64,000 nucleotides of DNA from Macrostomum hystrix. Lineage: Eukaryota > Animalia > Platyhelminthes. The position numbers and the translations under genes were made by a program. Positions 16,610 to 50,300 of this stretch are shown here, piece by piece; within the stretch, counting starts at the first letter, position 1; every line of letters begins with the position of its first letter. Under the pieces are notes generated by a model, which was given only the letters and a program-made list of their open reading frames with translations, ran no database searches and was not told the DNA's origin. The stretch lies in assembly GCA_950097015.1 (NCBI GenBank), contig CATNEN010000037.1, positions 3,658,001-3,722,000 on the forward strand. Reading direction: 5' to 3'.

Positions 16610-16908
16610 AGAGGTTGTAGCCTAGTGGTTAGGGTGTCGAACTCACGACTTGAAGGTCGGGGGTTCGATTCCCGACTCCACTGAAACAATTTGTCCTTTA
16701 GCAAGACACTTAAATCTGCATTGCTTCAGTTCACCCAGCTGTTAAGTGGGTACCAGCATCAGCTGGGATAATTGAAGGTGGGTGTGGCGTCCCCCCAGTC
16801 CATGGACTGAACAGCTGTACGCAGCCTTCAGATGCGCCGCGCAATAGCTGCGGCTGTGCTGTCGGCTGCAGGTGTAATCAATTATTATTATAAATTATTA
16901 TTATTATA
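16610..16908 (+). mobile_element. tRNA-derived SINE family 2, full-length, with CORE-like central domain
   Basis: A box tagcctagtgg, B box ggttcgattcc, central ttgtcctttagcaagacacttaaatctgcattgcttcagttcacccagctgttaagtggg, (att)n tail; second copy at 56245. Confidence 0.8.
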
Positions 16909-18948: not shown

Positions 18949-20370
18949 CACTCAGCAACATTGAAAAGTTTCCACCCTCGCGCAAGTTGTATATTTAGAG
19001 TTTCAAAACTGGTTTTTGTCGCCAGACTTGTGCCATAGACGATTGATGATTTCGTCAACACGCACTTGGGCCATAGAATTCAAAAACTTGGGTCATAGAC
19101 GCCAGACAAGTCGAAGGAAACAGTCACATGGAGCAGACAGCAGCATCTTACAGGAGTCTAAAATCCACGTTCGCAACCGAACGCAATGGTTCGCCAAATG
19201 ACCGACCTGGAACGAGCGCGCGCCATTGGCATGCTGGACGCTGGGATGTCCATCCGAGCTGTTGCTCGCCAAATTGGGCGGTCACACACAGCAATCCGCA
19301 AACTGCAGATCAAGTGCAGAGAAACGGGCAGCGTGGCGCACGCCACGCGCGGCCTGCGGCTAATTATGCGCAGTACAACTAGGAGGGCGGACCGGCGATT
19401 GCTGCGAATGGTAAAGGGAAGCCCCACATTGCCAGCCACCCTGCTACGGCTGATGTGGGCTGAAAGAAGCAGGCGAGGGAATGTCCTGAGCGCCCAAACC
19501 ATCCGACGACGATTGCGGGAGTCGGGGCTGCGATCCCGTAAGATGCGCAAACGGTCACGCCTGACCCCAACCCATGTGGCCAGCCGGGAACAATGGGCAA
19601 TGCAAAGGGTCCACTGGAGGCAGCAGCAGTGGCGGCGAGTGATTTTCACAGATGAGAGCCGCTTTCGATTGTTCCGTGCCGACGGCCGCGCCAGCCGCGC
19701 CAGGAGATGCTGCCGCAGCACGTGCAAAACTCTGAGAGCCAGTCAGCTTCTATTCACGTGTGGGCAGGCATCACAATGCACGCGAAGACGGAGCTCGTGT
19801 TCCTGGATGCGACTGTGACTGCCGAGTCGTACGCCAACCTTCTACAGACGCGCCTGCTGCCCTTCATTGATGCTTCATGTGGTGGCGTGGGGAACTGCGT
19901 CCTCCAAGACGACAACGCCCCACCGCATCGCGCAGCCGCTGGGGCGCATGTGAAGGAGCTGCTGCACCTGCGAACCTTGCGCTGGCCGTCCCGATCACCG
20001 GACATGAATCCCATAGAGCACGTTTGGGATTACCTGAAGCGCTCGATTCGGCGCGACAATCCGCCGCAAAATGTTGCCCAACTGCGCGAATCACTGTCTA
20101 CTGCATGGCAACAACTACCGCAAGATTTTCTGCGACGCCTGGTTCTGGGGATGCCCCGGAGAGTGAGCGCTCTGCTGCGCTATACGCGTTACTGACCCTG
20201 TTCTGGGCGAGTTGTCACCCATGCTCGCGTACTTTGTTTCTTTGCTGTTCCTTTGCTTCGGTCGATTCCGGATTATATATTTGTCTATGGCTCAAACCAC
20301 GAATATCTCCACAGACCAAAACGTTGCCCCTTCGCGCGCTAGGGTGGAAACTTTTCAATGTGGCTGAGTG
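18949..20370 (+). mobile_element. Tc1/mariner DNA transposon (DD34E), 1422 bp
   Basis: 30 bp TIRs cactcagc(a/c)acattgaaaagtttccaccct with one mismatch, flanked by TA at 18947-18948 and 20371-20372. Confidence 0.95.
19186..20195 (+). pseudogene. Tc1 transposase, frameshifted near 19690
   Basis: Frame 1 carries the HTH region and IFTDESRF; frame 2 carries VWAGI, LQDDNAPPH and SPDMNPIEHVW, with 34 residues between D and E. The C-terminus looks shortened (ALLRYTRY). Confidence 0.88.
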
Positions 20371-20658
20371 TAAATATATAGAAACTTCATAGGATCCTTG
20401 AGCTATTCTTCCACAGATCTTGAGTCATGTGTCCTTCAACGAGTACTTTAGTATCCTTAGGCGACTCTCATAGTAGGGAAGTTAATTCATGGGCCAGTCA
20501 TTAGACTGTCTGGAAATTATCAGTCATCTACGAAGTATGAAACCCATGGAAATGAAAGCGAATATCCAAATAATTCTGGGAGACCGGTTGATAAACTCAT
20601 GGTGACTAGCTCACACTGCATGGCTGCGCTTGCTTCAACGAGCTCGCATTGATATCAA

Positions 20659-26600: not shown

Positions 26601-29600
26601 GGATGGGTCAATCTGGTGAATTTAATGCGGGTAACACAGCTCAAAGTACGAGTAATTTTTTTACAAAAATTAATCAGACTCGGAGGAATTGCTCACGAGC
26701 TGCACCGAGTGCACCATTGCTCCCGTCCAGCTGTCCCAGACTCGGACGCAGCCGGAAATAGTCTGGCACAGGTAGCGATCAGCTGTCATCGAATTAGACG
26801 CCAGCAGCTGCTGAGCCTCAGAGTCGCTAGCCGATGATGCTGACGCAGTCGCATTGAACAGATGATAAACGATCTCGGATTTGTCCAGCTGCCACACTTG
26901 AATAGAGCCGCCCGGAGCGCAGACCACGGCCGTGTCAGAGTTGACGCGCAGCAGCCGACTGACGCCGGCGTGAGCGGCGCTGAGCAGGCCGCGCGGCGGC
27001 GGCAGGCAGGCCAGGTGAGGCACCAGCCGACCAGCGCCTCCAACAGGATCAGTCAACAGGTAGGCTCGAGCATCCAGCAGGAGTTGACGCACCGAGCTGT
27101 ACCGGTCCGACAGCAGGCTGGCATCAAGGCGTCCAATCAGTTCAACAGCGATGGCGGGCGGGTCGTCGCTGGCAACGCCAGCGGCGAGTTTCAGGAGGTC
27201 CTGCACCAGGCGGACCTCAGGGTCGGCTCGGCCCACAGCCTGCGTTTTTTTGAGTCGCTAGATCTTTTAGTTGTTGGGCTGGGCAAAGTTTGGTACATTT
27301 AAGTGTTGAGTGAAATTGTAGAATGGTAGGTGCAGTCGGTAGGTTTCAGTGTCGAGTGGAATGGTAGGTGCAGTTTGGTAGGTTTCAGTGTCGAATGGAA
27401 TGGTAGGTGCAGTCGGTAGGTTTCAGTGTCGAGTGGAATGGTAGGTGCAGTCGGTAGGTTTCAGTGTCGAGTGGAATGGTAGGTGCAGTTTGGTAGGTTT
27501 CAGTGTCGAGTGGAATGGTAGGTGCAGTTTGGTAGGTTTCAGTGTCGAGTAGAATGGTAGGTGCAGTTTGGTAGGTTTCAGTGTCGAGTGGAATGGTAGG
27601 TGCAGTTTGGTAGGTTTCAGTGTCGAGTGGAATGGTAGGTGCAGTTTGGTAGGTTTCAGTGTCGAGTGGAATGGTAGGTGCAGTTTGGCAGGTTTCAGTG
27701 TCGAGTGGAATGGTAGGTGCAGTCGATAGGTTTCAGTGTCGAGTGGAATGGTAGGTGCAGTTTGGTAGGTTTCAGTGTCGAGTAGAATGGTAGGTGCAGT
27801 TTGGTAGGTTTCAGTGTCGAGTGGAATGGTAGGTGCAGTTTGGTAGGTTTCAGTGTCGAGTGGAATGGTAGGTGCAGTTTGGTAGGTTTCAGTGTCGAGT
27901 GGAATGGTAGGTGCAGTTTGGTAGGTTTCAGTGTCGAGTGGAATGGTAGGTGCAGTTTGGTAGGTTTCAGTGTCGAGTAGAATGGTAGGTGCAGTTTGGT
28001 AGGTTTCAGTGTCGAGTGGAATGGTAGGTGCAGTTTGGTAGGTTTCAGTGTCGAGTGGAATGGTAGGTGCAGTTTGGTAGGTTTCAGTGTCGAGTAGAAT
28101 GGTAGGTGCAGTTTGGTAGGTTTCAGTGTCGAGTGGAATGGTAGACTGGTAGGTGCAGTTTGGTAGGTTTCAGTGTCGAGTGGAATGGTAGAATGGTAGG
28201 TGCAGTTTGGTAGGTTTCAGTGTCGAGTGGAATGGTAGGTGCAGTTTGGTAGGTTTCAGTGTCGAGTGGAATGGTAGGTGCAGTTTGGTAGGTTTCAGTG
28301 TCGAGTGGAATGGTAGGTGCAGTTTGGTAGGTTTCAGTGTCGAGTGGAATGGTAGGTGCAGTTTGGTAGGTTTCAGTGTCGAGTGGAATGGTAGGTGCAG
28401 TTTGGTAGGTTTCAGTGTCGAGTGGAATGGTAGGTGCAGTTTGGTAGGTTTCAGTGTCGAGTGGAATGGTAGGTGCAGTTTGGTAGGTTTCAGTGTCGAG
28501 TGGAATGGTAGGTGCAGTTTGGTAGGTTTCAGTGTCGAGTGGAATGGTAGGTGCAGTTTGGTAGGTTTCAGTGTCGAGTGGAATGGTAGGTGCAGTCGGT
28601 AGGTTTCAGTGTCGAGTGGAATGGTAGGTGCAGTCGGTAGGTTTCAGTGTCGAGTGGAATGGTAGGTGCAGTTTGGTAGGTTTCAGTGTCGAGTGGAATG
28701 GTAGGTGCAGTTTGGTAGGTTTCAGTGTCGAGTGGAATGGTAGGTGCAGTTTGGTAGGTGGCAGCCCAGTTAGGCACACCTGGTAATCGGCCATCAGAGC
28801 CTGGTAGCCCATGCCGGTGGCCTTGGCCAGGATCCAGCTCAGGTTGCAGGCGAAGCGCCTCTTGTAGTCGGCCAGCCTCTCCGGCTCAGAGGCGGCGCGG
28901 CCCGGCCTGAGCGAGTCCAGCCTGAGGCGCGGCAGCAGCGCCAGGACTCGAGTGTTGCTAGGCGACACCGGCTGCGGCGTCACCTGCCGATCGGCGTCTC
29001 GGATTGTTAGCGGCGACTTCAGGCGCGACAATGTCAAGGTGCGACGAATGCCGGTCTCGACTGAGAACAGTGCGAATAGGCGATCCGGCAGACCAGGGTC
29101 TGAGGCCACGTACCTGTGAGGATTTGCCAATCCAACTAATCATTGTTAAGACGTGCAAATGATCGTCCCGCTTAGTCTAGCAAAGTCTAGCAAGTCTTAG
29201 TTTATTAGTCTAGCAAAGTCTAGCAAGTCTTAGTTTATTAGTCTAGCAAAGTCTAGCAAGTCTTAGTTTATTAGTCTAGCAAAGTCTAGCAAGTCTTAGT
29301 TTATTAGTCTAGCAAAGTCTAGCAAGTCTTAGTTTATTAGTATAGCAAAGTCTAGCAAGTCTTAGTTTATTAGTATAGCAAAGTCTAGCAAGTCTTAGTT
29401 TATTAGTATAGCAAAGTCTAGCAAGTCTTAGTTTATTAGTATAGCAAAGTCTAGCAAGTCTTAGTTTATTAGTATAGCAAAGGCATCAGCCCTGGATTCC
29501 TGAACTGTTATTTTTGGAGCAGAAAGTGAAGACAGGAAACTCTGTAGCAGTTGCCGCAAATTTCAAAGTCGGCTGTCTCGCACCTGTCATGCGCTGCCTC

Positions 29601-32600
29601 AGTGAACTGCCTGTGAAACCAGCCGAACAACGGCTTGCCGTGGTCCTGCCGCACGCTGATGTACTCGTCAAGGTCGTACTTCAGCCGGGCCCACATAGTT
29701 GGCGGTATGCGCAACACCCCGGGCACTGGCGGACTGTGGAACTGGTACACATCGACCAGGAGATCGTCCTGGCAGGACAGGTAGTCCTCCAATTCGACCT
29801 CGCTGATACCGACACCAACCTGGCTCAGGTAGGTCAGGGGACCAAGGGCCGATCGGACGAACAGCTCTCCGTACCTGCCGGATTTAAAGGAGAATTCAAC
29901 AGCAGTTAGACCACGCTTTCCGTCCGGGGGGGAAGACCCTGGGGTATTTCAAATACACACTGCCTTCTTCTCGATAGCTCCCAAACCGAATGACCGATTT
30001 TTGTGAAAGTACACCATCTGAATTTAAATTTTCTGCCCTTTACGATGAACTGACTTTCAAAGCCGTCCGATCGTTGAGATAATCGGCGATTCTTGTCAAA
30101 GACTCTGTTGACAAGAACATCTACAACTAACATTGCTTTTTACAAATTAAATCAATCCAAAATAGTTACCAATTATAGTAGCAGACATAGTTACATGATG
30201 AAATTTTGTGACCCGAAAAATATGCCCATATTTGTGGTTCTTGCCACCAGACAATACGCCGAGAATCGTTGAACATCTCTACGATGCCGATGTTTTGGGA
30301 TTCTGGAAGTTTTTTAATCTGACAGAGCAGAACATTTTAGTCCGTGTTCAGGATTTTCATAACGGTTGATTGAATATTTTGGGAGACGCAGAAAAAAAAA
30401 TGCGGGTATTTGAAATATCCCGGTGGTCCTTCTACTGTTAATTTGCGATACGCTCGAATTGAATTCCTAAAGTTTGCCCTCTTCAGAGAGGCCATCCTGC
30501 TAAACAACGCCGCGACGTGGACACGACAGCGTCGAAAGCCAGACCCTGCACGGACTCCAAAGTCCGTCCACCAACTTACGCCGGCTGGTCATAACATCCT
30601 GCTGCTCATCTGGCATGGTCAAGCCGAGCTCTCACCTTTTCTCCAGTCCCTCGAACACGTGCTTCACCAGCATCTGCACGCAGTCGTCACCGGGTTGACC
30701 TACTGGCAATCGCGGCTCAGTAAATGATGTCCAGGTTAGCGCCTCTCGCATCAGCACCTTCAGGTAGATCGGCTTCGGGCACATCGCGAACATGTCCAGC
30801 AGGTACTGCTCCTGACTCTCTTGAAGCCGCCTGCCGCGCCTGCTGAGCTTCTTGCGCAACGCCGCCAGCGCAGTGTCGCGCGGCATCGCCGCCACCAATT
30901 CCAGCAGCTCGCAGTCGGGCGGAAATCTAATGTCGGACGCCGGCACTGACGTGAACACCAGGCGGAGGCCGGGCGGGCACACCCGAGGCAGCCAGGCCAG
31001 CGAGTAGGCGCCATCGCGCGGACTCAGCTGATCGAGCGAGTCCAGCAGAAGCAGCAGGCGCTGATTGCTGCCAGGCGCCAGGGGACCCTGGCACAGCGAG
31101 TTCAGGTACTGGGGGAAATACCTGGCGAGAGGGTGTTGGGTTTTTTTGTTGAACAAAAATGAAGAGCACGTATGAGAAAATGTAGATCTGGTAGATTAAG
31201 ATTAAGAAGAACACGGAGAGGAAGATTAAGAAGAACAGGGTGAGGAAGATTAAGAAGAACACGGAGAGGAAGCTTAAGAAGAACACGGAGAGGAAGATTA
31301 ATAAGAACAGGGAGAAGAAAAAGAAGAGACAAAGGATTAACTGGGACAGTTGCATTATGTTTCCGCTAATCCCTTCAGAGCACATCTATTATGGAACCTG
31401 GCTAGCAGAATGGAGCTCGCCGTGGCCTCTTCATCCACTGGCAGGCCGTAGATGAGCTGCAGCTGTTCCAGTAGGCTGCGCAGCAGGTCCCCGATGTGGT
31501 AGCTCATGGCCGATGTGCCCAGATAGCGAAACACGACGCTGACGCCGCTGCCTGGCGGGCACCACTCCTCCGTTGTCATGGTAACGCACTGGGCAAGCAG
31601 AGACGTCTTGCCCATGCCGGAGAGGCCCCGAATGAACAGTGGCCGCTTGGCCCTGCCCGGCTCGTCTAGCAGGTAGCGCTGCAGCCGCGCCAGCTGCTCC
31701 TCCTGGCCGCAGAAGGTCTTGACCTTGTTGACACCCACACGGTGATGACTGAGCACCTCCTGGGCCACGGGTGGCTGCCGTCCCAGCCGGGCCATCTGCA
31801 GCCGGATGAGGCCTCCGACCTCCTCGACAAAGGCGTCGCAGAAGCGTCGGCGATAGTCGCCAACTGAGCCGTCGACTGTGCCGTTGTGCCACGCCACGGA
31901 GTCGAAGCGGCGCACTTTGCGGTTGCCCAGGGCTGGGCCGATCTAGGTTTTTGGGTTCGTTTGAAGGTCACGGGTTTGGAATGTTGCGCAGCTGTTGAGA
32001 CTACCATAGCTGAAACATTCAAGCTGACACATTCAAGCTGACACATTCAAGCTGACACAGTAGAGCGTCACCTCAAAGCTAACCTCATCATTCACAAGCC
32101 GCTCGAGGCGTTCTCGATCTTCTCGTTTAGGCTCCACAAATCGGTCCAGCATCGGTGGCCAACCTTTCTCCTTAGCCGACTCGCCTTCGGCCTCTTTAAC
32201 ATCGACGTCTAGGCGACGAGCTAGACAGGCGGCGGTGCGCCGAGCCGAGTAGCTGTGCACCAGACCGGCTGACACTTCGCGCTCCGTCACCGACTCACTG
32301 TACGCCACCAGCCGCTCTGGGGTTAGCCGACCCGCCTGTCAGAGTTGCGTTGAATATGCGGATTAGAGATTAGAAGAGATTAGGCAACAGCAATTAGGCA
32401 ACATGAGTAACCTACTCACAGAAGTACACGGCTGCACAATGAGCATTTACCTGTGCAAGAAGTCCAGCCGCTCTAACCAATGTCTCACGCAGTCGCCTCG
32501 CCGTGGCGTCCCAGGCGCTGCGGGCGGCGCTTCTCAGCTTAGCATCGGCTGACAGGAAATCTGGCAGGCTGTGCACCACGGGCAGGAGGACCCGGGCTGG

Positions 32601-33907
32601 CGGAAGGCAGTTTTCGTCGCACCGGTACTGGCTTGGTGAGGAGAACCGAAAATCCAAATATTATTTGTCCTTCTCAGGGGGTGAGTGGTAATAAATCAAG
32701 GTCCCTGAGCTAGAATCCGGGTCGTGGTCACTCCATCATTTCATTTAGGGCGCAGCCGCTGTGGAGATGACTTGTGTGTCGTGCAGTTTTACGTCTATGA
32801 GAGGCAAACCACCCTCCAATAATAATAATATTATTAATAATTGAAGGACTGCCGTTGCCAAAGGCATATCATTTGGTGACACTAGACTCGCAGTCAGCAG
32901 TAGGTTATTCTGTCCATTTCGCTGACTCCTGAGCACACATGCACTCAGATCTTGTACGCAGGCATACTCGCACGCAGGTGTGTACAACTGCCCTGACTTT
33001 CTTATCGTCAGGCAGTGTACACTTGCACTGTGCCTTGGAGGTTGGCCCTAAAGGCGTTTATCGCATTGACAAGCCCCCAAGCCTTCTCTCCGCGGCTGCG
33101 CCACAAATGAATGTGGCCTCGCCGTGGAATCGAGCTTAGGGATATTGGTGCGAGTGGCAAATGTGTTAACCGTTCTGTCACTGACCCACCTGCGAACCCC
33201 CACCAAGGCACAATGAGAGTGTACAATGAGAGAGCTGATGCACACACCTGTGTGAGTGTGCCATAGTACGGTATCTATGTGCCTGAGTACTCAAAAGGCA
33301 GAATTTTGCTGGCTGCGGGTATACCGGGATGACAGGCGCAACCTCAAAACCCTGCCAAGTCCGCAGCCCACCTGTTGACCAGTTCAACCTCCGCGGGCTC
33401 CATCACGCTCAGCAGGGCGTCAAATTCGACGGACTGCACCGATTCGGGTGGCCAGCAGCCGCCGCGGCGCTCGCCAATGAAGGCCACAAACGCGGGGCCG
33501 TAGGAGAACTTCAGGCACTGGCGAACCTCGCGCAGGCAGAGCGCCGCCGATGAGTGCTCGTTGACCATCTCCTGCGTGACGCCCCAGCGCAGGTCGACTG
33601 CGGAGAAATCTAGACCCCGATTGGCGCACAGCGACTTTAGCCGGGGAAAGCAGTCCACACTCAGCCAGTTCCGCTCCTCTTTGAAGTCTGTGGGTTTCAA
33701 GACGTTCCGCGATTTTTCCTGAAATAACTTGAACAATTGTCAATTAAACTTACCTGAGAAAGTGGAGCTCAGGAAGATCTTCACAGCATTGGACACGGGC
33801 ACCTGGTGCCTGTCCAAATAGCCACGGAGAATTCTTTGTAAATCCTCATGCGATCCATCCGGATTATCGTGACTGAAGGACGTTTTGCTAAAGTGACAAG
33901 AAAACAT
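20659..33907 (-). CDS. NACHT and WD40-repeat protein (NWD1/NWD2-like STAND ATPase with N-terminal DUF4062-like domain), about 17 exons
   Basis: Exons (approx.): 33907?-33754, 33687-33372, ~32632-32451, 32335-32084, 31942-31398, 31121-30636, 29874-29584, 29113-28780, 27239-26697, 26612-26429, 26215-26065, 25456-25045, 24324-23929, 23338-23099, 22866-22372, 21639-21394, 20907-20659; phases join. Motifs: KIFLSSTFSDFKEER, VDLRWGV, Walker A GLSGMGKT, Walker B LLLDSLDQL, PIYLKV, SEVELEDYLS, and WD repeats (AHTRLVTGL, GHTDLIRCC, SGSRDQTMRVW). Start codon and the exon-3 acceptor are uncertain. Confidence 0.85.
21050..21320. repeat. Degenerate repeat/MITE-like insert (ggaaagtcttggcga x3; inverted ttttcccgtagc/gctacggaaag) in the last NWD intron
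   Basis: Short direct and inverted repeats visible; no coding capacity. Confidence 0.45.
21865..21960 (-). mobile_element. tRNA-like SINE head fragment
   Basis: Minus strand reads cggacttctaagcgagaggtcgggagttcgaatctc then gcggaagacac, similar to the family 2 head and start of body. Confidence 0.5.
22960..23090. repeat. Short degenerate purine-rich repeat (agagtagagatg) in an NWD intron
   Basis: Read directly; explains the L/S-rich middle of ORF 22481-23269. Confidence 0.75.
23445..23702 (+). mobile_element. SINE family 1 copy, 5'-truncated
   Basis: cattcatttggggcgcagcc..., hairpin core, gtgtcaccaaatg and an (att)n tail. Confidence 0.75.
25720..26020. repeat. 26 bp minisatellite in an NWD intron
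   Basis: Unit ctcgtctggtagcagaagggaaatcc. Confidence 0.93.
27320..28760. repeat. 39 bp minisatellite in an NWD intron
   Basis: Unit ggtaggtttcagtgtcgagtggaatggtaggtgcagttt (13-aa period in the spurious ORF). Confidence 0.97.
29175..29482. repeat. 33 bp minisatellite in an NWD intron
   Basis: Unit gtctagcaaagtctagcaagtcttagtttatta, itself built from a duplicated gtctagcaa. Confidence 0.95.
29930..30433. mobile_element. MITE-like element (~500 bp) with ~26 bp imperfect TIRs in an NWD intron
   Basis: Left ggaagaccctggggtatttcaaatac is the inverse of right gtatttgaaatatcccggtggtccttc. Confidence 0.55.
31195..31325. repeat. 24 bp minisatellite in an NWD intron
   Basis: Unit aagattaagaagaacacggagagg, about 5 copies. 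Confidence 0.85.
32818..33195 (-). mobile_element. SINE family 1, near full-length, nested antisense within an older family 1 copy (32755-32817 plus 33196-33330)
   Basis: tRNA-like head ggtgggtcagtgacagaacggtt...aagctcgattcc at the 33195 end and (att)n tail at 32818; flanks are two halves of a plus-oriented copy. Confidence 0.75.
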
Positions 33908-35609
33908 TTGGGATGTAGCTTTCGAATGTCATAGCAGTTTAAAAAAACATCATTTGAAACGTTCAATGAAAACTTACATTTCCATTTTTTAATGGAAACC
34001 ACCAAAATTTATCTACTCAGAATCTACTCATCGTTTGTCTGAAACAACGAAAACGGATTTTTTTTAACGCGCAATAATAAATTTTCTAAACACAATCCTA
34101 GTTGTCATTGACAAAATATTGCTGATTGTTTTCATTTGGCTAACATTACTGAGTTATAAGCTCATATAATATAATAAAATATGCTATATTCCTCATTTGG
34201 ATCCTTAACTGTGAAACTTCAGTGAAAGCATATGAGAATTTTAATTCTATGAAAATTACAGTATTCTTTTACTTATTTTTTTACTTCAAAAAATGTTTTC
34301 TCTATTTTTCTAGAGTTACTCATAATTTTCGTTTCAATAAACAAACCGAACCACACTTAAAGTAAGTTATGACTGACAGAATAGCAACCATTTAGATTCA
34401 TTATATACTTTATTTTCATCTGATTCAACATCTTCCTATGTGTTTTCTTGTTTTATTATTCTTTTTTATTCTTAATAAGAAGATTTTTTCTTTTTTCTTT
34501 TGAGCAGATTTATAAACAAATTCTGCGCATAACATAACCATAACGAAAGTAATTAGACATGCATAAAATCAGACTGTGTGATCAACCAATGCATCATTAT
34601 GAAGGCACTGTGGCAAGTCAAGAAATCAACGAATAGATTAACTCAATGTGACAAATCTTGGTATACATGAAAGTTTAAAAAGATGGCTTAATATGCGCGA
34701 ATAGAAACAGCAGTTACAGTTATAGTATTATTGACTTACAGAGCTGATCATATTTTTAATAAAACAAATATCTCAAGTACAAACAAAAAAATATTTTCTA
34801 ACTAAAATGTGACTTTTAAGTAAGTTGATTTGTTAAAATTTCAAAAGCCGAAACCGGAAATCTCAATTTGAAAGCTAAAAAACGGAAATCAGTCAATCAT
34901 ATTTAAATTAATAAAAACAAAAAGCACAGTTTTTGAGAGGCAAATGTCAGTGAAAAAATAACAATCGAACTTTCCTAGAGCGACAAAACTAAAAAAGCTT
35001 GTGCAAAAAATCTTAAGAAAAATTAAGATTGGCGTGTCCACTTTGAGAAGATCGTTTTTTTAATTACTCGTCAAAATTAAATTATCAAGTTTTGTATAAA
35101 TACATAGACTTGAGTGATGTTCTTTGTGCCAGAATTCATGCAAATTATGACGTAGCATCGATATATGTAATGCATATAAAGAAGAAAGGAAGACTTTCAG
35201 GAAGAAAGAGTACTGAAAAGTTTAAGTCAAATATATTCAGCTTAGAATTTTCTGCTAAGTTAAAATTTCTCGACCTTCTCGAAGAATGATCGTATGAGAA
35301 GCATGCAACGCCATTTTGTTTGCGTAGATGCAACTTCACGAATTTGATTGACGCCTCGAGTCGGGCTTTTATCTTTCGGCAATTGATACAAATGACATTA
35401 AAACTGGCTCACAGTAGTTAGGAGACGAGAATAGACATGAAAAACCCAACGAGGTAAACTGATACTTGATTATTTGATAGATACTTATTGCATGTGGCGA
35501 TGACATAGTGCTAGCTTACTTTAAACAAAGATATAAGAACAGTATACTTTCCAAAGTCTCGCATAGAAGCCCAAAATGTATCCTCGAACACCGGGCATCT
35601 TTTGCGAGT

Positions 35610-37869
35610 TCACACTTGAATCATCATTTGAAATTCCATCAGAGATTGGAAGCCTTCTCTGAAGTACCATACAGCATATGTAGTGCCCGCAGTGCTGCCA
35701 AAGTGATAGATGCCGTTCGGATTGGCCAAACTGCAGCTGCTCTGATACCACCAACCAGCGTAGCCACCCCAATTCACTGAGCAGTGCATTGCAGAGTAGC
35801 CATCGTTGTCAACGTCTCGGGTAGAAAATTTTTGACCTTTAGAATATTCCAGGGCGTCATAAACGAGACTTGACGACTCCTTGACCATCGATTCGTACGT
35901 CATAACGTACCCTGTACTCGCGTTGCCAACATAAAACTTGGAATACTCGGCGTGCCATTCAGTCTCATTCCAAAGCAAGATTTCGACACGCAATGTTGCT
36001 TCCTGCCTGCTTGTTAGCCGATGCAGAAGGTCTAGACCTGAAAAAACTCTGCAAAAGTAGAATTCCTTCTCAATGACCAAATAGAAAACGTGCCACACAG
36101 AATACTAAACCCACCAATCCAAAAGTTGTGCGTGTCTCCGAAGCCATTCACATATGCCTGCCAATAGCGCTGGAAATCACTGTTTCTACAACTGCGCCGA
36201 AGGACTACAACAAAGTTGCGATCACCCCGAGAGACAGTCTTTTTACGAAGAGCCTCAAAGTTCAAGATACCGCTAGTATTTCTTGGGGCTCTCGGCTTGT
36301 CCTTCATCCTAAAAGCGAAGCGGCGCTGGCGGAACTGATATTCGCAATTGTCGTTTAAAAGAAACGATGCCGTCCACTGAAGATCCTTCCAGAAGTTGAC
36401 CGGCTCAGAGCTTAAAACGGAACTAAAAGGAACCAAAAGGTAAAAATTTCCTAGAGGGAAAATAGCCCAACGTTGACAGTCTGCCCAAAAGAGGAATCGG
36501 AAAATTAACCTTACACAAGCAGTTCGCAGGACTCGAATGTGATGCAGTAGGCCCTCAGCTCCGCACTTCTCCGATCAACTGACAGCCTCAGAGGCTCAAA
36601 CCTCCACCTAGATAGTCTGGACGTTACGTGGATGCTCGCGTCCCACAGCTTCATGAATGAGATCGACTCAATCGGCACAGATCCCATTTGAGACCTGACC
36701 GCCGCGATCACAGAGGCATCCTCGACCACCGCGGGCAGTCTCACGTAGTGGCTGCCGAGTGAGAAGTCTCTGAGCAGTTGGAAGTTCGGGCTCGGACACA
36801 GCAGCGGCTCGATCACAAAGTCTCCAGTCTTTCTCCGCCTCTGATGCACATAGGCTGTGCAGTTGTCGAGCTGCACCACTTTGAAGAGCTGGAGGTCGGA
36901 GCAGGACCGCATCGGGGTGGTCCAGGGTCTCTGCATCGACTTGATCGGCAGGAACGGAGCGCGCGCGATGGTTACTGGGAATTCACGCTCGACAGGAGCG
37001 CAGCCCTCGCCAACTCGCATGCTGGCAATAAGGCGCAAGCTGTCAAAGACTTCCGTCTGCTGTTGTGAGATGTATAACCTATATTGATTTTGAAGGAGTA
37101 CTTTCAAGGGTCGTATTATTGGAAATGGGATGAAAACGTTAAGAAACTTTAATTCACCTCTAAGTCATACTACTGCTCTATAAGAAAAATGTGCATTTAA
37201 GAAGTCCAATCTTTTCACTTTTAGCTTTTAAAGAAATAATTCAAGCTCATTTTGTTAAACGACCTTTCATCGGCGAAATCAACAAAGCGAAGCGGAGAAA
37301 TATTATGTCTCGTTTCAAACTTACGCCAGAGCAGGACAGGTAAATTCGTTGCAGATCAGACGCAGGTGGCCAACGAACTCGTTGGGACCCCATAGGAATG
37401 TCGCATTCGTGAACGCAAGGCTCCTGTCGCTGCTCAGTTGAACGCTCGTCACCTCCAGGAACGACACGGACTTTGGCGACAAATGTCCCAGCATCGAGGC
37501 GACCTCCGTGGTGAGATTCTCGTCGATCACATTCACCGGGAAGCTGAAGTAGAACTCGTTGGTCAGCAGGTCGAAGTGGGCGCTGGGACTTGACAGGGCG
37601 CTCTGCTCGGTGATGCAGAATGTGGGCTCCAGCACGAACCTTCCGGCCTTGACCGCGCCCACACGGTGCACGAACACGGGACAGCCGCGGATCGACAGGC
37701 TGGTGACGAAGGACAATTGGCTGATCCCAACGCATCGGCGTTCGTTGTTGGTGATCGAGACGGAGAGCGGCTGGGAGACGGTTTGCGCATCTGCATCGCT
37801 GACAGTTGGTGAGCCTTGGACATGGCTAAGCCAGCAGAAAATAGACAGCAGTGCGAGGTTGAATCGCAT
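35610..37869 (-). CDS. Secreted fibrinogen-related protein A: signal peptide, two unknown repeat domains, fibrinogen C-terminal domain
   Basis: Exons 37869-37325, 37078-36515, 36422-36115, 36037-35610 (intron phases 2, 2, 1). Hydrophobic N-terminus; FReD motifs DFQRYWQAYVNGFG, FWIGLDLLHRLT, KFSTRDVDND, GWWY, ANPNGIY. Confidence 0.85.
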
Positions 37870-39043
37870 TTTTATGGGAAAAGAAGCTGTTGCGCTTCAA
37901 GCTGGCGTAAGCTTGTACGAGCTTGTAGGGAACTTCGTGTGGGTGAGTTAACTCCTCCGCGCTAGACTGAGCTTTTGATTGTTTCAGCAGTTTTAACAAG
38001 TTTTATCTGAAAGTGCGCAGCTCTATGTTGCAATTTTATATTCTACGAGCGTAGCTTATTTATGACGCACAGATCCGAAAATGATCACATAAATGTGCCG
38101 ATGCAAGTTGTTAGAATCAAGATTTCTATTCGAGATAAATGACAATTGATGCGTCGTCAGATTAGAGTGTAAATGACAGTTCTTATTTATACAGAAGTTC
38201 AAGATTATCATGTTTACCGTCTCCTAGATTAAAATGTATATTGCATGAGCCATGTGACTGCAGTGTAGAAGTATCGCCAGCAGAGGCTCCACCTGTTTTA
38301 AATTAATATTTGCAATCCAAGAGTGCACAATAGCGTTCGTAGCAACTTTTTCAGGCAGACATAGGCTTCTGTACTGGACGCCATGCAGGCTATTTGCTAG
38401 TTTTTCGTGACACATGCTGATTATACAATGCGCAGTTCGACGTTCGGAGCTCGAGATGAACTGGTTCTTACATGTACGAGCTTAAATACTCTGTTAGTTA
38501 TCACTTCGAATAAAGTTGTTATATACATTAATGCATAGCCGCCTACCATTTTTTAGAGATCTTGTCCACTATTATCTATTATTACCTGATGGGCATTTGG
38601 CATGGATCGTGAAGCAAAGAGTTATGTTGAGCGAATGATCATGACGACACCAAATCACGTCTCATTCATGTACCTCAGCCTTTTTAGTTAGAAGACGTGA
38701 ATAAATTTTAATATCGTGTATTTTTAATAACGATCAAAAAGGAATCATGTCTCCGAAATCGACACGAAGGATGAAAATTCTATTTGAAAAACTTGTACAA
38801 CCTCCTTTACTGGGGCAGAAAAATCGAGTCGAATTGCTTTGTGTGGCTGAGTTGCGTATTGAATTGACGACGACCAGGTTTGAAGTCATTAGTTTAGGTC
38901 GGAAGAACAGGAAAATATATTGATAAATTTGAAAGTGCATTGCGAAAGTCAATTGCTTTGAATCGATAGACTGACTATTGCAACTCGATGACCAATTTCA
39001 ACACTCACTGTAAATAGCCAGCGGGCGTAACATAAAATTATCG

Positions 39044-41162
39044 TTAAACTTGAATCAGCATTCTAAACTCTTTCAGGGCCTTGAAGCCTTCATTGAAATA
39101 CCAAACTGAGTTGGCCGAGCTAGTGGTTTCAGAAAAACTGTAAACACCTGTGGGATTGGCAGTGCCGCAGCCGGAATACCACCACCCGCCGGAGCCGGCC
39201 CAGCTCTGGGAGCAGTAGCCAGCAGAGGAGTGCCCGTCGTTGTCAACATCTCTCGTCGTAAATTTGTAGCCCTTTGAACTCGCCATGGCATCGTACAGAA
39301 GGCTTGATTTATCACGGATCATTGACGTGTAGTTCATTTTATAACCCGTGCTTACGTTACCGATTGAGAAGCCAGAGTACTCCGCAAACCACTCCGTTTC
39401 GTTCCAGAGAAGCATCTCAACACGTAAGGTTGCATCTTGTGGGTTAGTTAGCCGGTGCATTACTTCAAGGCCTGAAACATACAACAAGCTTCTTCGATTA
39501 TAGGCTCAAAACATAGCATCCTAACAATTGTTGGCAAACAACCTTACCAATCCAGAAGTTTGCCTTATCACCGAAGCCCGCCACATATTGCTCCCAAAAT
39601 AGACTGAAATCGCTGCGCTTGCAGGTGCGTTGCATAACAATAACAAACGTGCGACCAGAACGCTCAACCGTTCTGTTGCGCAGAGCCTCAACCAGCTGCA
39701 GGGATTCGTTTAGTTTTGTGTTTAGTCCAGCTGACCGCTCCCTCTGTCTGAAGACAAATCGACGCCTGTCGTAGTGGAGTTCACAATAGTCACTAAATAG
39801 AAACGAAGCGGTCCATTGTATCTCCTTCCAAAAATTAACAGTCTCAGATTGAAGAACAGATCTAAAATAAAAAATCGGCGTAGTGGTGGCAAGACGGAAA
39901 TTTAGGGTGGCTAAAAATGTAATAGTTTTCGATATCTTACACAAGCAGTTCGCAGGACTCGAGTGTGGTGCAGTAGGCCCTCAGCTCCGCACTTCTCCGA
40001 TCAACTGACAACCTCAGAGACTCAAACCTCCACCTAGATAGTCTGGACGTTACGTGGATGCTCGCGTCCCACAGCTTCATGAATGAGATCGACTCAATCG
40101 ACACAGATCCCATTTGAGACCTGACCGCCGCGATCACAGAGGCATCCTCGACCACCGCGGGCAGTCTCACGTAGTGGCTGCCGAGTGAGAAGTCTCTGAG
40201 CAGTTGGAAGTTCGGGCTCGGACACAGCAGCGGCTCGATCACAAAGTCTCCAGTCTTTCTCCGCCTCTGATGCACATAGGCTGTGCAGTTGTCGAGCTGC
40301 ACCACTTTGAAGAGCTGGAGGTCGGAGCAGGACCGCATCGGGGTGGTCCAGGATCTCTGCATCGACTTGATCGGCAGGAACGGAGCGCGCGCGATGGTTA
40401 CTGGGAAGGTCTGCTTGACGCAACCTTCAACCACTCGCATACTTGCTGTGATACGAATTCCATCGAATACTTCCATGCGGTATTTGGATAAAAACATTCT
40501 AGCGGAGTAGAGAAATGGCGGTTGCTGATTTTTTAGTTAAAAGGATAAAATGCATGATAATACACATACGCTTATACTTGTAAGCTACGACACTCAAACA
40601 AATCTCACGCGAGCGATGGACAAGCGTAGTCGTTGCAGATCAGCCGCAGGTGGCCAACGAACTCGTTGGGACCCCATAGGAATGTCGCATTCGTGAACGC
40701 AAGGCTCCTGTCGCTGCTCAGTTGAACGCTCGTCACCTCCAGGAACGACACGGACTTTGGCGACAAATGTCCCAGCATCGAGGCGACCTCCGTGGTGAGA
40801 TTCTCGTCGATCACATTCACCGGGAAGCTGAAGTAGAACTCGTTGGTCAGCAGGTCGAAGTGGGCGCTGGGACTTGACAGGGCGCTCTGCTCGGTGATGC
40901 AGAATGTGGGCTCCAGCACGAACCTTCCGGCCTTGACCGCGCCCACACGGTGCACGAACACGGGACAGCCGCGGATCGACAGGCTGGTGACGAAAGTCAG
41001 GCCATTGGTTAGGCTGTCAGTGCACCTGCTGCTGTCATACGTGATCGAGCCTAACTGCGACTTAAAAGCACTCGGTTGCGATGAATCTTGATCAACTGGA
41101 GAGCCACTGATACAGCAAATGCAACTGACAACAAGTAGAAAGATGCTAGCTTTGAGACGCAT
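39044..41162 (-). CDS. Secreted fibrinogen-related protein B (paralogue of A)
   Basis: Exons 41162-40609, 40498-39941, 39861-39548, 39471-39044 with the same phases; FWIGLEVMHRLT, KFTTRDVDND, GGWWY. Confidence 0.85.
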
Positions 41163-42316
41163 TTTCTCTTTTTGATCGCCGAGGAGCAGAATATTTTTTA
41201 CTGAATTTTTATGTTTAATATAAATTGTTTCTCCTTTGGCCGTTGATTTTTTGCGAATTACGCTCGTAGAAACAAAATCTGAACGCTTGGTTTCGGGAGG
41301 CAGTCAATGTGAAATAATTTTGTCTTAACTGAAATGGTTTAGATTGTGCTAGCTGATGCTAGAGTTGCTTGGCTGTACTTGACGCTTGCCAACCATAATC
41401 AAGGCTCGAGGCTTGCTGCTTTTGGCGCTGTTTACGTTTGAATGGATTAATCTAATTGACAGGAATTGATTTTATCGAAGCCACCATGACCATCAGAGTC
41501 TAAATTTGCAGCTCAGATGGGTGCAATTGGTTGCTTCAGCTGCTGATATCGCGATAAATATGTTTGTGTAGATGACTTTGCTAGGCAGTGCACCAATGCA
41601 AGGGTTGTTTCGAGTGCTTCGATTGACGCAGATTTGGTGCACTTGGAAAGAGCTTGGAATCACGTGCCGCAACTAGCCAGTTGATGTCTGTAAACTTTGA
41701 TTACTTTGGGCTCATCGACGCTAAAAATAAACTTGTCAGAGATGCACTCCGATATTTGTTGGGCACAACTGATCTGCATATGTTTTTATGTCGGCCTATT
41801 CTCAACAAGTTTGGCGTGTTTTAAAATCAAAACTGTAAACAAGAACCAGATATATATAATTCAATCAAGAGGTAGGAATTACTTTCCATGACGAATAAGA
41901 TGTGAATCGGCCTCTTTCACGTCAATATTATTATCCCAGTAAAACAACATTTAGCATTCGCTTTTTTACTATCTTATATATATATAAATCATTAATTTGA
42001 ATTGCACTTAACAATTTCCTGTAATATGAAGCCTTTGAATTACGGGCTGAACACATTGACACAAAAGTGCTTCAAGAGTAACGTTTGGATTAAAAAGTAG
42101 AATGTAGATTGCAGTGCTTGCGAATTTTGTTCATAAAAATCGATATTAAACAACTGTGGCTCATCAAGTTTGAACAAAGTAGCAAATCTTTTGAGAAACC
42201 AATCGGTTTGGAAAATTGAAATATGGGTTTATCGATTTCTATTGATTTAACAAAATATATAGTTTACTTATATCGAGTTTAGCTCGTATTAAGCGGTTTT
42301 ATACCCCCTTCATCGA

Positions 42317-44901
42317 TCAAAGCTGAACCATCATGCGAAATTCTTTCAGAGATCTGTAGCCCTCTTTGAAATACCAAGAAGAATAGGCAGTGCTAGTCGT
42401 CTGGCCGTAGTAGTAAGGACTGTTGGGAAACGAATTGCCACAACCGCTGGGGTACCACCATCCGCCATTGCCCCCGTGACTTTGCGAGCAGTGACGACCG
42501 GAATAGCCGTCATTGTCAGCGTCCACAGTTGAAAAGTATCCAGTATACAATGAGTTAACTACTAGACTGGATTTGGCCAGCATCATCTCCGAGAAGCTCA
42601 TCAAATATTTGCTGCTAGAATTGCCTACAGTGAATCCAGAGTACATGGCGTACCATTCGGTGTCATTCCACAATAGCATCTCCACGCGCATTGTGGTGCC
42701 CTGCCAACTAGTTAGGCTATGAATGATGTCCAGACCTGCGAGAAAAAGGTTATGAATATAGCTGAAACAAGATGAGTAAAGGAAAACAGAGACAGACAAC
42801 CTATCCAAAAGTTGTGCTCGTCTCCAAAGCCGGCCACGTATTCCTTCCAGGTGCGCTGAAAGTTGCTGGCCCTGCAGCCGCGCTGAGCAATCACTATAAA
42901 AGTTCTTCCGTCTCTAGTGACAGTTCGATTCCGCAAATCCTCCCATGTCCACCGACCGCCAGTTCTCTGCTGCGCCACAACAGTGCCGGTCGCGAGCCGG
43001 TCCTTCATCCGCATTGCAAAGCGCCGCTGCTCAGAACGGAATTCGCAGTCGTCGTCCAGCAGGGAAACGGCGGTCCATTGAATATTCTTCCAGAAGTTCA
43101 CTGGCTCCGTCTTCAGAACGAATCTGACGATAAAAATACAAAAGTTTTACTATCATTACTTCCTGATTCTCTCTTTGTTTGTTTACGCTCGCACGCATTG
43201 TAAATGTACTTTCTCCTATCTCCCAGCTCAATCTGTAAAAATTATTATCGAACCATTCACTTCTCTTTCCTTTCCCTCGTCTCTGATTGGCTAGCTGCTC
43301 GTCTCTGTTTCCTCACCCCTCCTTTTCAACACTAACCCTCTGGCCCGTCCTTATCTCTTGGTTAATGTTTTTGATTCTCGTCGTTGTCTTGAGTGATGGT
43401 TTCGTCAAGCGTACTTCACTGTCTCGTCTCAGTCACTTCGCAGTTTCGTCTAATTCTCATCGTTTTCTATTGAAGGCGTCGTCGCGATTTCGCTCCTGGT
43501 CTCGTCAAAGCGGTCAAAATTCTTCAGGGATTCCTGGACTGCATTGTTAAACCATCTACTCTGTATTGTGAGATTTTCCGAATTTTTTCGCGACATTTTT
43601 CTTCTTTTTTTATATATTTCTACGAGGCGTGATTTTTTTCCCACTGCTCATATTCAATTTTTGGAGTAAATGATTACCGATGCATCACATCAGTGCATCA
43701 CATATGCAAAACTATGACTCACCCAAGCGCTTCACAAGGTGCTTGACTGCTGCAGTAGGCCCTCAGCTCCGCACTTCTCCGATCAACTGACAGCCTCAGA
43801 GGCTCGAACCTCCACCTAGATAGTCTGGACGTTACGTGGATGCTCGCGTCCCACAGCTTCATGAATGAGATCGACTCGATCGACACAGATCCCATTTGAG
43901 ACCTGACCGCCGCGATCACAGAGGCATCCTCGACCACCGCGGGCAGTCTCACGTAGTGGCTGCCGAGTGAGAAGTCTCTGAGCAGTTGGAAGTTCGGGCT
44001 CGGACACAGCAGCGGCTCGATCACAAAGTCTCCAGTCTTTCTCCGCCTCTGATGCACATAGGCTGTGCAGTTGTCGAGTTGCACCACTTTGAAGAGCTGG
44101 AGGTCGGAGCAGGACCGCATCGGGGTGGTCCAGGATCTCTGCATCGACTTGATCGGCAGGAAGGAAGCGCGCGCGATGGTTACTGGGAATTCACGCTCGA
44201 CAGGAGCGCAGCCCTCGCCAACTCGCATGCTGGCCTTGAGGCGCATGTTTTGAAAGGCTTCTGTTTGCCCCTTTGCCAGATAAAGCCTACAATAATGTAA
44301 GAGCTATACTTAGAAATTCGTCACTGAGCTTTTACAAGTCACGTATGCCGACTCACTTCAGTGACTGGCATTCAAATCCTGAGCACACCAGGCGCAGGTG
44401 GCCAACGAACTCGGTGGGACCCCATAGGAATGTCGCATTCGTGAACGCAAGGCTCCTGTCGCTGCTCAGTTGAACGCTCGTCACCTCCAGGAAAGACACG
44501 GACTTTGGCGACAAATGTCCCAGCATCGAGGCGACCTCCGTGGTGAGATTCTCGTCGATCACATTCACCGGGAAGCTGAAGTAGAACTCGTTGGTCAGCA
44601 GGTCGAAGTGGGCGCTGGGACTTGACAGGGCGCTCTGCTCGGTGATGCAGAATGTGGGCTCCAGCACGAACCTTCCGGCCTTGACCGCGCCCACACGGTG
44701 CACGAACACGGGACAGCCGCGGATCGACAGGCTGGTGACGAAGGACAATGTGTCTGAGGAGTTCATACCACAGAACATCCGATCGTCTGTGATTTGATTA
44801 GGCCAGGTTTCAGATACATTCCCTGTTTGCCCGTCGGCCGAGGAGCCAGTGCCAACAGCGCACAGAACTATTAGAGAATAGCAAAACTGCAGTAGAAGCA
44901 T
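42317..44901 (-). CDS. Secreted fibrinogen-related protein C (paralogue of A)
   Basis: Exons 44901-44357, 44286-43723, 43123-42801, 42735-42317 with the same phases; FWIGLDIIHSLT, FSTVDADND, GGWWY. Confidence 0.85.
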
Positions 44902-47336: not shown

Positions 47337-50300
47337 CTAGCGACCCAGGCGCGAAAGCCGACGCTGCCGCAGCTCCTCCTCGGACATTGCGGTTGCCGAA
47401 CGCGAGGACGGTGGCCGCGGCGACGCGACCGGCTCCTCCTGGAACACTCGGTCGGCTTGACGATCCTCGCGACTGGCGCCGTCGTTCCAGCATCGGTAGA
47501 ATTGACGTCGACCGTCGCCCAGAATGCCGCTAAACAATGGCTCCATGATGTGGCGCAGGGGGCCTTTGACGTAGGCCAAGCCGACTAGGATACCAGCCAG
47601 ATGACCTGGGTTTTAGGTAACCGGGTGTGCTTAACTAGACAGAAAAACATTATAAAGTTATTCAGCCATGAATCACCGGTGGGTAGTCCTGAAGGATCAG
47701 GCAAAAAGCCTTTAAACACAGGTGGAATCAGAGGAAAACAAATAAATAAACTCATTGGCAGAGCAACTCACCAATGAACGAAGCATTCGGCGTCAGGAGT
47801 TGAATGATGACCAGCTCCGCCCACACGGTCAGTCGAGAGTGCACAGGCAGGAAGCCCATGACGTATGTGATCCCGGGCGGCATGTTGTATGTGGTCAGGA
47901 CCTTGAGTGCAAAGATTACACCTGAAATGTAATAGCTGGAAACATTCAACTGCGAAGATGAGACACAGGAGAGATGAGACACGGGAGAGATGAGACACGG
48001 GAGAGATGAGACACAGGAGAGATGAGACACGGGAGAGATAAGACACGGGAGAGATAAGACACAGGAGAGATAAGACACGGGAGAGATAAGACACAGGAGA
48101 GATAAGACACGGGAGAGATAAGACACAGGAGAGATAAGACACGGGAGAGATGAGACACGGGAGAGATGAGACACAGGAGAGATGAGACACGGGAGAGATG
48201 AGACACGGGAGAGATGAGACACGGGAGAGATGAGACACAGGAGAGATGAGACACGGGAGAGATGAGACACATGAGAGATGAGACACAGGAGAGCTGAGAC
48301 ACAGGAGAGATGAGACACGGGAGAGATGAGACACGGGAGAGATGAGACACGGGAGAGATGAGACACAGGAGAGATGAGACACGGGAGAGATGAGACACAG
48401 GAGAGATGAGACACGGGAGAGATAAGACACGGGAGAGATAAGACACAGGAGAGATAAGACACGGGAGAGATAAGACACAGGAGAGATAAGACACGGGAGA
48501 GATAAGACACAGGAGAGATAAGACACGGGAGAGATGAGACACGGGAGAGATGAGACACGGGAGAGATGAGACACAGGAGAGATGAGACACATGAGAGATG
48601 AGACACAGGAGAGCTGAGACACAGGAGAGATGAGACACGGGAGAGATGAGACACGGGAGAGATGAGACACGGGAGAGATGAGACACAGGAGAGATGAGAC
48701 ACGGGAGAGATGAGACACGGGAGAGATGAGACACGGGAGAGATGAGACACGGGAGAGATGAGACACAGGAGAGATGAGACACGGGAGAGATGAGACACAT
48801 GAGAGATGAGACACAGGAGAGCTGAGACACGGGAGAGATGAGACACGGGAGAGATGAGACACAGGAGAGATGAGACACGGGAGAGATAAGACACGGGAGA
48901 GATGAGACACGGGAGAGATGAGACACGGGAGAGATAAGACACGGGAAAGATAAGACACGGGAGAGATGAGACACGGGAGAGATGAGACACAGGAGAGATG
49001 AGACACAGGAGAGATGAGACACGGGAGAGATGAGACACGGGAGAGATGAGACACGGGAGAGATGAGACACGGGAGAGATGAGACACGGGAGAGATGAGAC
49101 AAGGGAGATATGAGACAAACGAGAGACGAGACAAGGGAGAGATGAGACAAACGAGAGACGAGACAAGGGAGAGATGAGACACGGGAGAGATGAGACACAG
49201 GAGAGATGAGACACGGGAGAGATGAGACACATGAGAGATGAGACACAGGAGAGATGAGACACGGGAGAGATGAGACACGGGAGAGATGAGACACAGGAGA
49301 GATGAGACACGGGAGAGATAAGACACGGGAGAGATGAGACAAACGAGAGACGAGACAAGGGAGAGATGAGACACGGGAGAGATGAGACACAGGAGAGATG
49401 AGACACGGGAGAGATGAGACACATGAGAGATGAGACACAGGAGAGATGAGACACGGGAGAGATGAGACACGGGAGAGATGAGACACAGGAGAGATGAGAC
49501 ACGGGAGAGATAAGACACGGGAGAGATGAGACACGGGAGAGATGAGACACGGGAGAGATGAGACACGGGAGAGATGAGACACAGGAGAGATAAGACACAG
49601 GAGAGATGAGACACGGGAGAGATAAGACACAGGAGAGATAAGACACGGGAGAGATGAGACACGGGAGAGATGAGACACGGGAGAGATGAGACACGGGAGA
49701 GATGAGACACGGGAGAGATAAGACACGGGAGAGATGAGACACGGGAGAGATGAGACACGGGAGAGATGAGACACGGGAGAGATAAGACACGGGAGAGATG
49801 AGACACGGGATAGAGGAGACAGCGGAGGGATATATATTAGCTAGCGGGCCAAAGAGAGAACCTTAAAGACGAGAGCGGACCGCATGAACTGTAAATATAT
49901 GAGATAAGGGATAGATGAGACATAGAAGAGATGACGGGGAGATGAAGAGACACAGGAGAGATTAGGAACGGGAGAGATGAGACAGGGGAGAGATGAGACA
50001 CATGAGAGATAAGACACAGCAGAGATGAGACAGGGTGTGAAATTATGGGTTCTGAGACGAGTAAGTTAGGAGTAGAAAACAAGCACGCATTCATTAGCGT
50101 CCGCGCAGTCATATTTATTGTACTAGTACGACTCAATGGCTGACTCAGCATTGTTAGGAGATTAGGGGTGGGTGCTACAGCGCCTTGCATCAGTGAGAGA
50201 AAGTAAGCATTGGAAATCTAAAAAAACAGCACAGTGGGGTGACATGGGTGCACGTGAACTATAGCCATGCAGATAGCAAATAGCGAGTATTGAAATGACA

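Follow-up and report, generated by a model that had tools for sequence, protein, structure and literature searches.

Conversion restricted to one region of neighboring receptor paralogues has been described for Siglec-11/16 (PMC5701461), Siglec-5/14 (PMC4042635), and the CEACAMs (PMC2832619), and a model built on HMA4 of Arabidopsis halleri deals with the way in which tandem paralogues subject to conversion diverge as mosaics (bioRxiv 10.1101/2025.10.29.685298; review PMC3924837). Here, we describe a locus of this kind in the flatworm Macrostomum hystrix, in a stretch of 64,000 nucleotides (assembly GCA_950097015.1, contig CATNEN010000037.1, positions 3,658,001 to 3,722,000 of the forward strand; called the window below, and coordinates are positions in it unless another locus is named). 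Positions 35610 to 44901 hold a tandem trio of minus-strand genes, A, B, and C, with four exons apiece. Two blocks inside their first two exons, core 1 and core 2, are nearly identical among the three genes in otherwise diverged surroundings, a pattern very probably explained, on sequence evidence, by recurrent interlocus gene conversion (segment-specific concerted evolution) limited to these cores. Our literature search returned no paper dealing with the fibrinogen-domain genes of Macrostomum or with conversion among them. The preliminary description of the locus had taken its architecture for undescribed; this holds for the gene family and for its unnamed domain (here, the D domain), which are new, while the conversion process was already known, region-restricted concerted evolution being documented in Siglecs and CEACAMs.

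Two homogenized cores in two Macrostomum genomes

In the three genes, exon 1 begins with a signal peptide and an N-terminal stretch that varies, followed by core 1 and a variable tail of 11 codons; exon 2 has a variable head, core 2, and a tail of 10 codons. Exons 3 and 4 form a divergent fibrinogen-related domain. The genes and cores are located as follows.

35610-37869, minus strand: gene A, 614 amino acids (aa); exon 1 37325-37869, exon 2 36515-37078, exon 3 36115-36422, exon 4 35610-36037; stop codon 35610-35612
39044-41162, minus strand: gene B, 617 aa; exon 1 40609-41162, exon 2 39941-40498, exon 3 39548-39861, exon 4 39044-39471
42317-44901, minus strand: gene C, 616 aa; exon 1 44357-44901, exon 2 43723-44286, exon 3 42801-43123, exon 4 42317-42735
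37361-37710, minus strand: core 1 in gene A, encoding the folded body of the first D domain, D1 (model residues ~35-152)
40645-40994, minus strand: core 1 in gene B, from direct-repeat scan and alignment
44393-44742, minus strand: core 1 in gene C, from direct-repeat scan and alignment
36544-36981, minus strand: core 2 in gene A, encoding the folded body of the second D domain, D2
39970-40407, minus strand: core 2 in gene B, from direct-repeat scan and alignment
43752-44189, minus strand: core 2 in gene C, from direct-repeat scan and alignment

The direct-repeat scan returned two families of three copies each, with identities of 93 to 100% and a spacing of 3.3 to 3.8 kb. Core 1 is identical between A and B at 350 of 350 positions and shows two differences in C, while core 2 (438 nucleotides [nt]) differs at four sites between A and B and at seven in both the A/C and the B/C comparison. 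Sliding-window alignment of the three units gave two blocks of 98 to 100% identity with abrupt edges and flanks of 20 to 55%; outside the cores, 50-nt windows in signal peptides, N-terminal segments, and introns were 22 to 55% identical, and the fibrinogen-domain exons encode proteins sharing 49 to 62% of residues. No further copy of core 1, core 2, or a fibrinogen-domain exon was found elsewhere in the 64-kb window.

The identity of the cores includes silent sites. Nei-Gojobori estimates per segment gave a synonymous divergence (dS) of 0.009 to 0.049 for the cores of A, B, and C (0.012 to 0.023 for core 1), against a saturated proportion of synonymous differences (pS) of 0.65 to 0.93 in the signal peptide plus N terminus, the exon tails, and both fibrinogen-domain exons. 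Two parts of exon 2 are exempt from this saturation, its head in A/C and its tail in A/B; they are tract extensions (see below). Core 1 begins and ends inside an exon, and for every gene pair core 2 has one or both of its edges inside an exon; the exon borders were set by spliced RNA contigs. With uniform placement of the 92 differences between A and B in exon 1, a difference-free run of 350 nt has a log10 P of ≤-39. The preliminary description had already given these core coordinates and counts of differences, and both proved exact; its accounts of diverged surroundings, of identity at silent sites, and of mid-exon edges were likewise reproduced. The GC content at third codon positions (GC3) of the cores is 0.75 to 0.87, higher than in the fibrinogen-domain exons and within the range of neighboring genes (0.58 to 0.78), so that GC-biased conversion, considered as added support, was given little weight.

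The best match to a profile of D1 and D2, P0001, is annotated as [quoted passage not shown] and lies on contig NIVC01000142.1 of GCA_002269645.1, the Mlig_3_7 assembly (PMC5730564, PMC11641670). The locus on this contig (L001) repeats the gene order of the window: a rhomboid gene, C', B', A', a conserved open reading frame (ORF), and a NACHT/AAA gene. Its flanking genes share 79 to 90% protein identity with those of the window, and the noncoding DNA does not align. At L001, the cores are 98 to 100% identical among A', B', and C' and 70 to 91% (about 80%) identical to the window cores. Maximum likelihood trees of core 1 and core 2 were split by genome with support of 100/100, while those of exons 3 and 4 paired C with C' (100/98 and 99/97) and A with A' (88/89 and 93/95). 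The dS of the cores was 0.5 to 0.8 between genomes versus 0.01 to 0.06 within a genome; between genomes, nonsynonymous divergence (dN) was 0.10 to 0.13 in the cores and 0.17 to 0.32 in the fibrinogen-domain exons. Divergence of the cores between genomes, together with identity within each, indicates that the sequence is free to change and that the copies in one genome change together. The pattern is one of partial concerted evolution: inside the tract paralogues are closer than orthologues and silent sites are homogenized, whereas outside it the grouping is by orthologue (weak for B and B'). The preliminary description had proposed localized gene conversion and a sister-species comparison to check it, and the proposal was borne out in M. 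lignano, with cores clustering by genome and fibrinogen-domain exons by orthologue.

Core edges are similar, not identical, in the window and in M. lignano. The tails of 10 or 11 codons beside the cores keep orthologue-specific states, C going with C', which indicates that the edges have been roughly in place since the genomes split. Tracts differ from pair to pair. The near-identity of core 2 extends 5' to ~37052 between A and C (an extra ~70 nt) but not in B, and 3' to the splice donor at 36515 between A and B but not in C. When the differences in core 2 were polarized with L001, derived states were found to be shared by A and B against C at 36670 and 36598 and by B and C against A at 36927, that is, incompatible partitions within 440 bp. 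In M. lignano, the tract shared by A' and B' is far longer: it begins at the start codon, takes in intron 1, and ends where core 2 ends. Taken together, pair-specific tract edges and incompatible derived sites indicate several conversion events. The cores have been homogenized, this has recurred, and it has happened in both genomes.

Two other uses of the comparative data were discarded. The lower dS of the cores than of the fibrinogen-domain exons between genomes was not read as a difference in rate, given that pS values of 0.37 to 0.50 are near saturation and GC3 is skewed. A cross-species comparison by means of public runs labeled as other organisms (X2 and X9) was also rejected, as their contigs are 99 to 100% identical to the window; at this locus, the differing labels do not stand for diverged species.

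All three genes are transcribed and spliced. Their coding sequences comprise 614, 617, and 616 codons, with exon lengths that sum to a multiple of three in each case. Splice and depth evidence came from contigs of public runs aligned to positions 35400 to 39960 of the window. For gene A, the ORFs are joined by GT..AG junctions of all three introns (246, 92, and 77 nt) in spliced RNA contigs from two studies. For gene B, introns 2 and 3 and a poly(A) tail are covered by RNA contigs, placing the poly(A) site at ~38627, and the acceptor of intron 1 probably lies where sequence and reading frame locate it. Gene C was modeled from ORFs and frame-keeping GT..AG sites, its introns thus being placed from sequence, and gene C-specific sequence adjoining the cores was recovered as loose ends in DNA and RNA contigs. 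Since RNA contigs run on from the core edges into B- and C-specific sequence, transcription extends to the whole trio. Spliced contigs are present in runs X2, X4, and X9, whose listed type is "DNA?" or unknown, so that these runs behave as transcriptome data; X2 additionally shows a poly(A) tail.

The annotation of the M. lignano locus has its own irregularities. P0001 (598 aa; L001:10001-16012) is a chimeric model in which exon 1 of B' is joined to exons 2 to 4 of A', and the remainder of B' was called separately as P0016, probably because gene calling was misled by the near-identity of the cores. In A', the last exon (L001:15632-16059) is split across two frames, with a frameshift after "...NFVVG"; the copy on another M. 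lignano contig (P0014) is intact. The frameshift reflects an indel of the assembly or else a single broken copy in the neopolyploid genome.

The D domain and its lectin heads

Exons 1 and 2 carry paralogous copies, D1 and D2, of a single domain (28% identity, E value of 3e-9) characterized by conserved cysteines and an invariant Glu-Pro motif. The exon translations gave no match to a Pfam family for this domain. AlphaFold models built from a domain alignment of 25 to 27 sequences reached a predicted local distance difference test score (pLDDT) of 85 and a predicted template modeling score (pTM) of 0.72 for D1, and 84 and 0.73 for D2, with the same order of alpha and beta elements. The part of each model that is folded with confidence coincides with the core; the variable stretch at the N terminus has low confidence, and the variable tail is predicted to form the last short helix. 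Fold searches with the D2 model found no credible match (best E value of 0.096 with Foldseek against PDB; best Z of 4.7 with VIA-align against 48,161 chains).

Homology searches used single exons, or database proteins, as queries. A D1/D2 profile compared to 1.84 billion representative proteins yielded 13 matches, 2 of which were spurious repeat proteins. In the true relatives, a fibrinogen domain is preceded by one or two D domains, or a C-type lectin domain by five to six; the D domain was seen solely in Macrostomum-type proteins, fused to one or the other of these heads. The occurrence before C-type lectin heads indicates that the module is not tied to fibrinogen heads, and from its sequence distribution it looks like a scaffold module that is combined with different lectin heads. 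Runs of five to six consecutive D domains followed by a C-type lectin domain are seen in P0002 (1462 aa), which comes from a transcriptome contig of run SRR30276812, in P0004 (1285 aa), and at locus L002. A word-based protein search with exon 1 gave no match within a length window that excluded the full-length relatives, which are three times longer; the same kind of search with the full-length M. lignano protein returned M. lignano copies only, and a language-model protein atlas gave weak, meaningless matches only (≤0.85).

The last exon of A and of B matches Fibrinogen_C (Pfam PF00147) above the gathering score, with E values of 2.9e-21 and 4e-21 over profile positions 77 to 218 of 221, and the third exon matches positions 36 to 80 (E value of 4e-5). 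The closest solved relatives of the fibrinogen domain are those of angiopoietin, tenascin, and ficolin (E value of ~1e-11), with angiopoietin-1 as the best one for the last exon (E value of 2e-11). In the alignment to angiopoietin-1, a putative calcium-binding D-x-D-x-D motif, DVDNDG (DADNDG in gene C), and the cysteine pair of the P subdomain line up. The preliminary description had spoken of diversified ligand-binding heads, and this part was not supported: judged by their sequences, the fibrinogen domains are old conserved paralogues, recognizable as orthologues in both genomes, and no evidence of diversifying selection on them was found (dN of 0.17 to 0.32 between genomes). The related idea of a constant module, with a putative role in oligomerization or as an effector, plus variable heads is plausible. 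The proteins look secreted, and a lectin function is putative. The D1-D2/fibrinogen genes define a family of putatively secreted proteins of lectin type that had not been described in flatworms and whose building block is restricted to this lineage.

Gene conversion and its alternatives

We propose that the three genes are tandem paralogues of old standing, that each encodes a probably secreted protein composed of a signal peptide, D1, D2, and a C-terminal fibrinogen-related domain, and that recurrent nonallelic conversion copies short tracts among them only in the segments for the folded bodies of D1 and D2. These segments are also the slowest-evolving parts of the proteins and are kept ~99 to 100% identical, silent sites included, while signal peptides, linkers, short domain tails, introns, and fibrinogen-domain exons evolve independently. 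Tracts would stop where they meet fast-evolving, unalignable sequence, with identity sustaining conversion and divergence blocking it, and we infer that such a heterology barrier is the cause of the sharp mid-exon edges. The same process has operated in the same two segments of the second Macrostomum genome.

Several points weigh against this explanation or soften it. The cross-genome test was made with one other genome, where the counterparts could be orthologues or old homeologues, although either suffices for the test, and the pairing of B with B' has weak support in the trees of both exons 3 and 4. The raised GC3 of the cores would be in line with GC-biased conversion, but the few new mutations that could be polarized run from G/C to A/T. 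Contig depth in the DNA run, 198 in core 2 and 236 in core 1 compared to 63 to 75 in the unique flanks (~3.0 and ~3.4 times), is not a strict measure of copy number. Logan contigs break at the core edges, and the identity of the interior in each copy rests on this depth and on the lack of alternative contigs; moreover, the DNA run, with 94% of words, may be the assembled sample itself. Finally, the homogeneity of the cores could be either selected for or a passive by-product.

Three explanations dispense with conversion. An assembly or polishing artifact, in which the loci really differ in their cores but were all given the same consensus by collapse or cross-polishing, would be favored by the nature of the repeats, since near-perfect copies of 350 to 440 bp are of the type that short-read polishing can homogenize, and by the possible origin of the best DNA run in the assembly's own sample. 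Against it, the core contigs have about three times the depth of the unique flanks, their letters vary solely where A, B, and C are known to differ, and the core edges have loose ends that match only B and C; the core sequence is the same in RNA contigs of another study, from 2020, in which overlaps of 30 nt connect it to flanks specific to A, B, and C, and the independently assembled M. lignano genome has the same two blocks homogenized with its own sequence. The artifact is thereby largely refuted, and we give it very little credence. Hardly more can be said for the idea that, without any copying, the nucleotides as such are under extreme purifying selection, be it for an antisense ORF, for RNA structure, or as the target of a small RNA. 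Long antisense ORFs do overlap both cores in all three copies and core GC3 is high, but such ORFs are expected from GC3-rich coding sequence, the cores that are identical within each genome differ at ~20% of nucleotides (dS of 0.5 to 0.8) between them, and trees split by genome at 100/100 cannot arise from constraint alone, which makes this explanation about as improbable as the artifact. The least probable of all is a very recent duplication of the whole gene followed by ultrafast divergence outside the cores. It would account for tandem genes of similar size with a common exon plan, yet introns and intergenic DNA do not align, and A goes with A', and C with C', in the fibrinogen-domain exons and domain tails of two genomes whose silent sites are saturated, so that the split of A, B, and C must be older than that of the genomes; recent duplication is already refuted by this orthologue-wise grouping of exons 3 and 4 and the tails. 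As far as sequences can tell, the two-genome pattern excludes both nucleotide-level constraint and recent duplication.

A different kind of alternative keeps conversion but makes the identity adaptive: D1 and D2 of the three proteins would co-assemble or bind one common partner, and selection would shield the distinct fibrinogen heads from conversion. That these two segments are homogenized in each of the genomes, with edges in nearly the same places, is in line with it, as is the array of five to six D domains before a C-type lectin head, expected of a scaffold module, and, by analogy, region-limited conversion in vertebrate paired receptors has been read as adaptive (PMC5701461, PMC4042635). 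However, a passive model suffices in which the slowest segments stay convertible and heterology halts the tracts; the lowest dN being found in the cores fits the passive model, and the edges are similar but not identical between genomes. We therefore regard adaptive identity as possible but on the unlikely side. More doubtful still is the specific suggestion that D1-D2 is a selected constant module for assembly or docking of A, B, and C, and perhaps of their C-type lectin relatives, giving mixed oligomers or recruiting a common effector with different heads. If true, it would amount to a flatworm-specific combinatorial recognition system on a domain of no recognized fold, with conversion as its maintenance mechanism.

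Surroundings and comparison with known systems

The ORFs beside gene A (33344-33736 and 30632-31915) have counterparts with 85 to 90% protein identity in the M. lignano block and include a NACHT/AAA_16 ATPase gene directly adjoining the lectin cluster; together, the two might form an innate-immunity neighborhood. The window is rich in long minisatellite arrays (3772-7961, 27321-28759, 47956-50032, and 61876-63995, among others) with units of 16 to 48 nt and up to 194 copies; several are extremely strand skewed, and the one at 47956-50032 separates the rhomboid gene from the cluster of fibrinogen genes. Tc1/mariner-type transposase ORFs (HTH_Tnp_Tc3_2, E value of 2.5e-12) are found at 19186-20392 and a tRNA gene at 16611-16680.

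As a case of segment-specific concerted evolution, the locus is unusually clean, with two intraexonic blocks kept alike in three old paralogues, base-sharp edges, and independent maintenance of these blocks in two genomes. It is suited to measuring conversion tract length, heterology barriers, and the balance between homogenization and functional divergence, and transgenesis methods are established for M. lignano. The A, B, and C proteins are candidate components of innate recognition in flatworms, for which molecular data hardly exist. In practice, the identical cores will confuse short-read expression counts and orthology calls.

Among described systems, Siglec-11/16, Siglec-5/14, and the CEACAMs resemble this locus in that neighbors of immune-type lectin or adhesion families are near-identical in one part of the gene only, repeatedly and in several lineages. 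There, the homogenized part is the ligand-binding N-terminal immunoglobulin (Ig) domains and the diverged part is the signaling tail (activating versus inhibitory), whereas in A, B, and C a nonlectin module is homogenized and the lectin-type domain has diverged, in proteins that are apparently secreted. The frames of A, B, and C end with the fibrinogen domain and have no hydrophobic C-terminal segment, so they are not paired activating and inhibitory membrane receptors. The HMA4 model shares with this locus tandem copies in which homogenized blocks stand beside diverged ones, but it concerns a different kingdom and type of gene, and A, B, and C are far older, with saturated silent sites and the same blocks in two species.

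Like ficolins and tachylectin-5, the Macrostomum proteins combine a C-terminal fibrinogen-related domain, with the D-x-D-x-D calcium site and cysteine pair, with an N-terminal nonlectin part that could serve assembly. Unlike ficolins, they have no collagen-like or coiled-coil region (collagen Gly-X-Y repeats were absent from the translations of exons 1 to 3, with no collagen Pfam match), and their fibrinogen domain is divergent, with sugar binding putative. The FREPs and CREPs of Biomphalaria (PMC7588048, PMC12074976) are similar in being secreted, in having one or two N-terminal nonlectin domains before a C-terminal fibrinogen-related domain, in that their type of N-terminal module is likewise combined with a C-type lectin head, and in the conversion reported in the snail family. 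The N-terminal domains of A, B, and C differ from those of the snail proteins in having neither an Ig match in Pfam nor, for the D2 model, a match to an Ig fold. The polarity is also the opposite, as snail FREPs are more conserved in the fibrinogen domain and more variable in their Ig domains (PMC7588048). Because the D domain is not Ig-like, A, B, and C are not members of the snail FREP family but, by analogy of architecture, a putative functional parallel to the snail proteins that join Ig domains to fibrinogen or C-type lectin heads.

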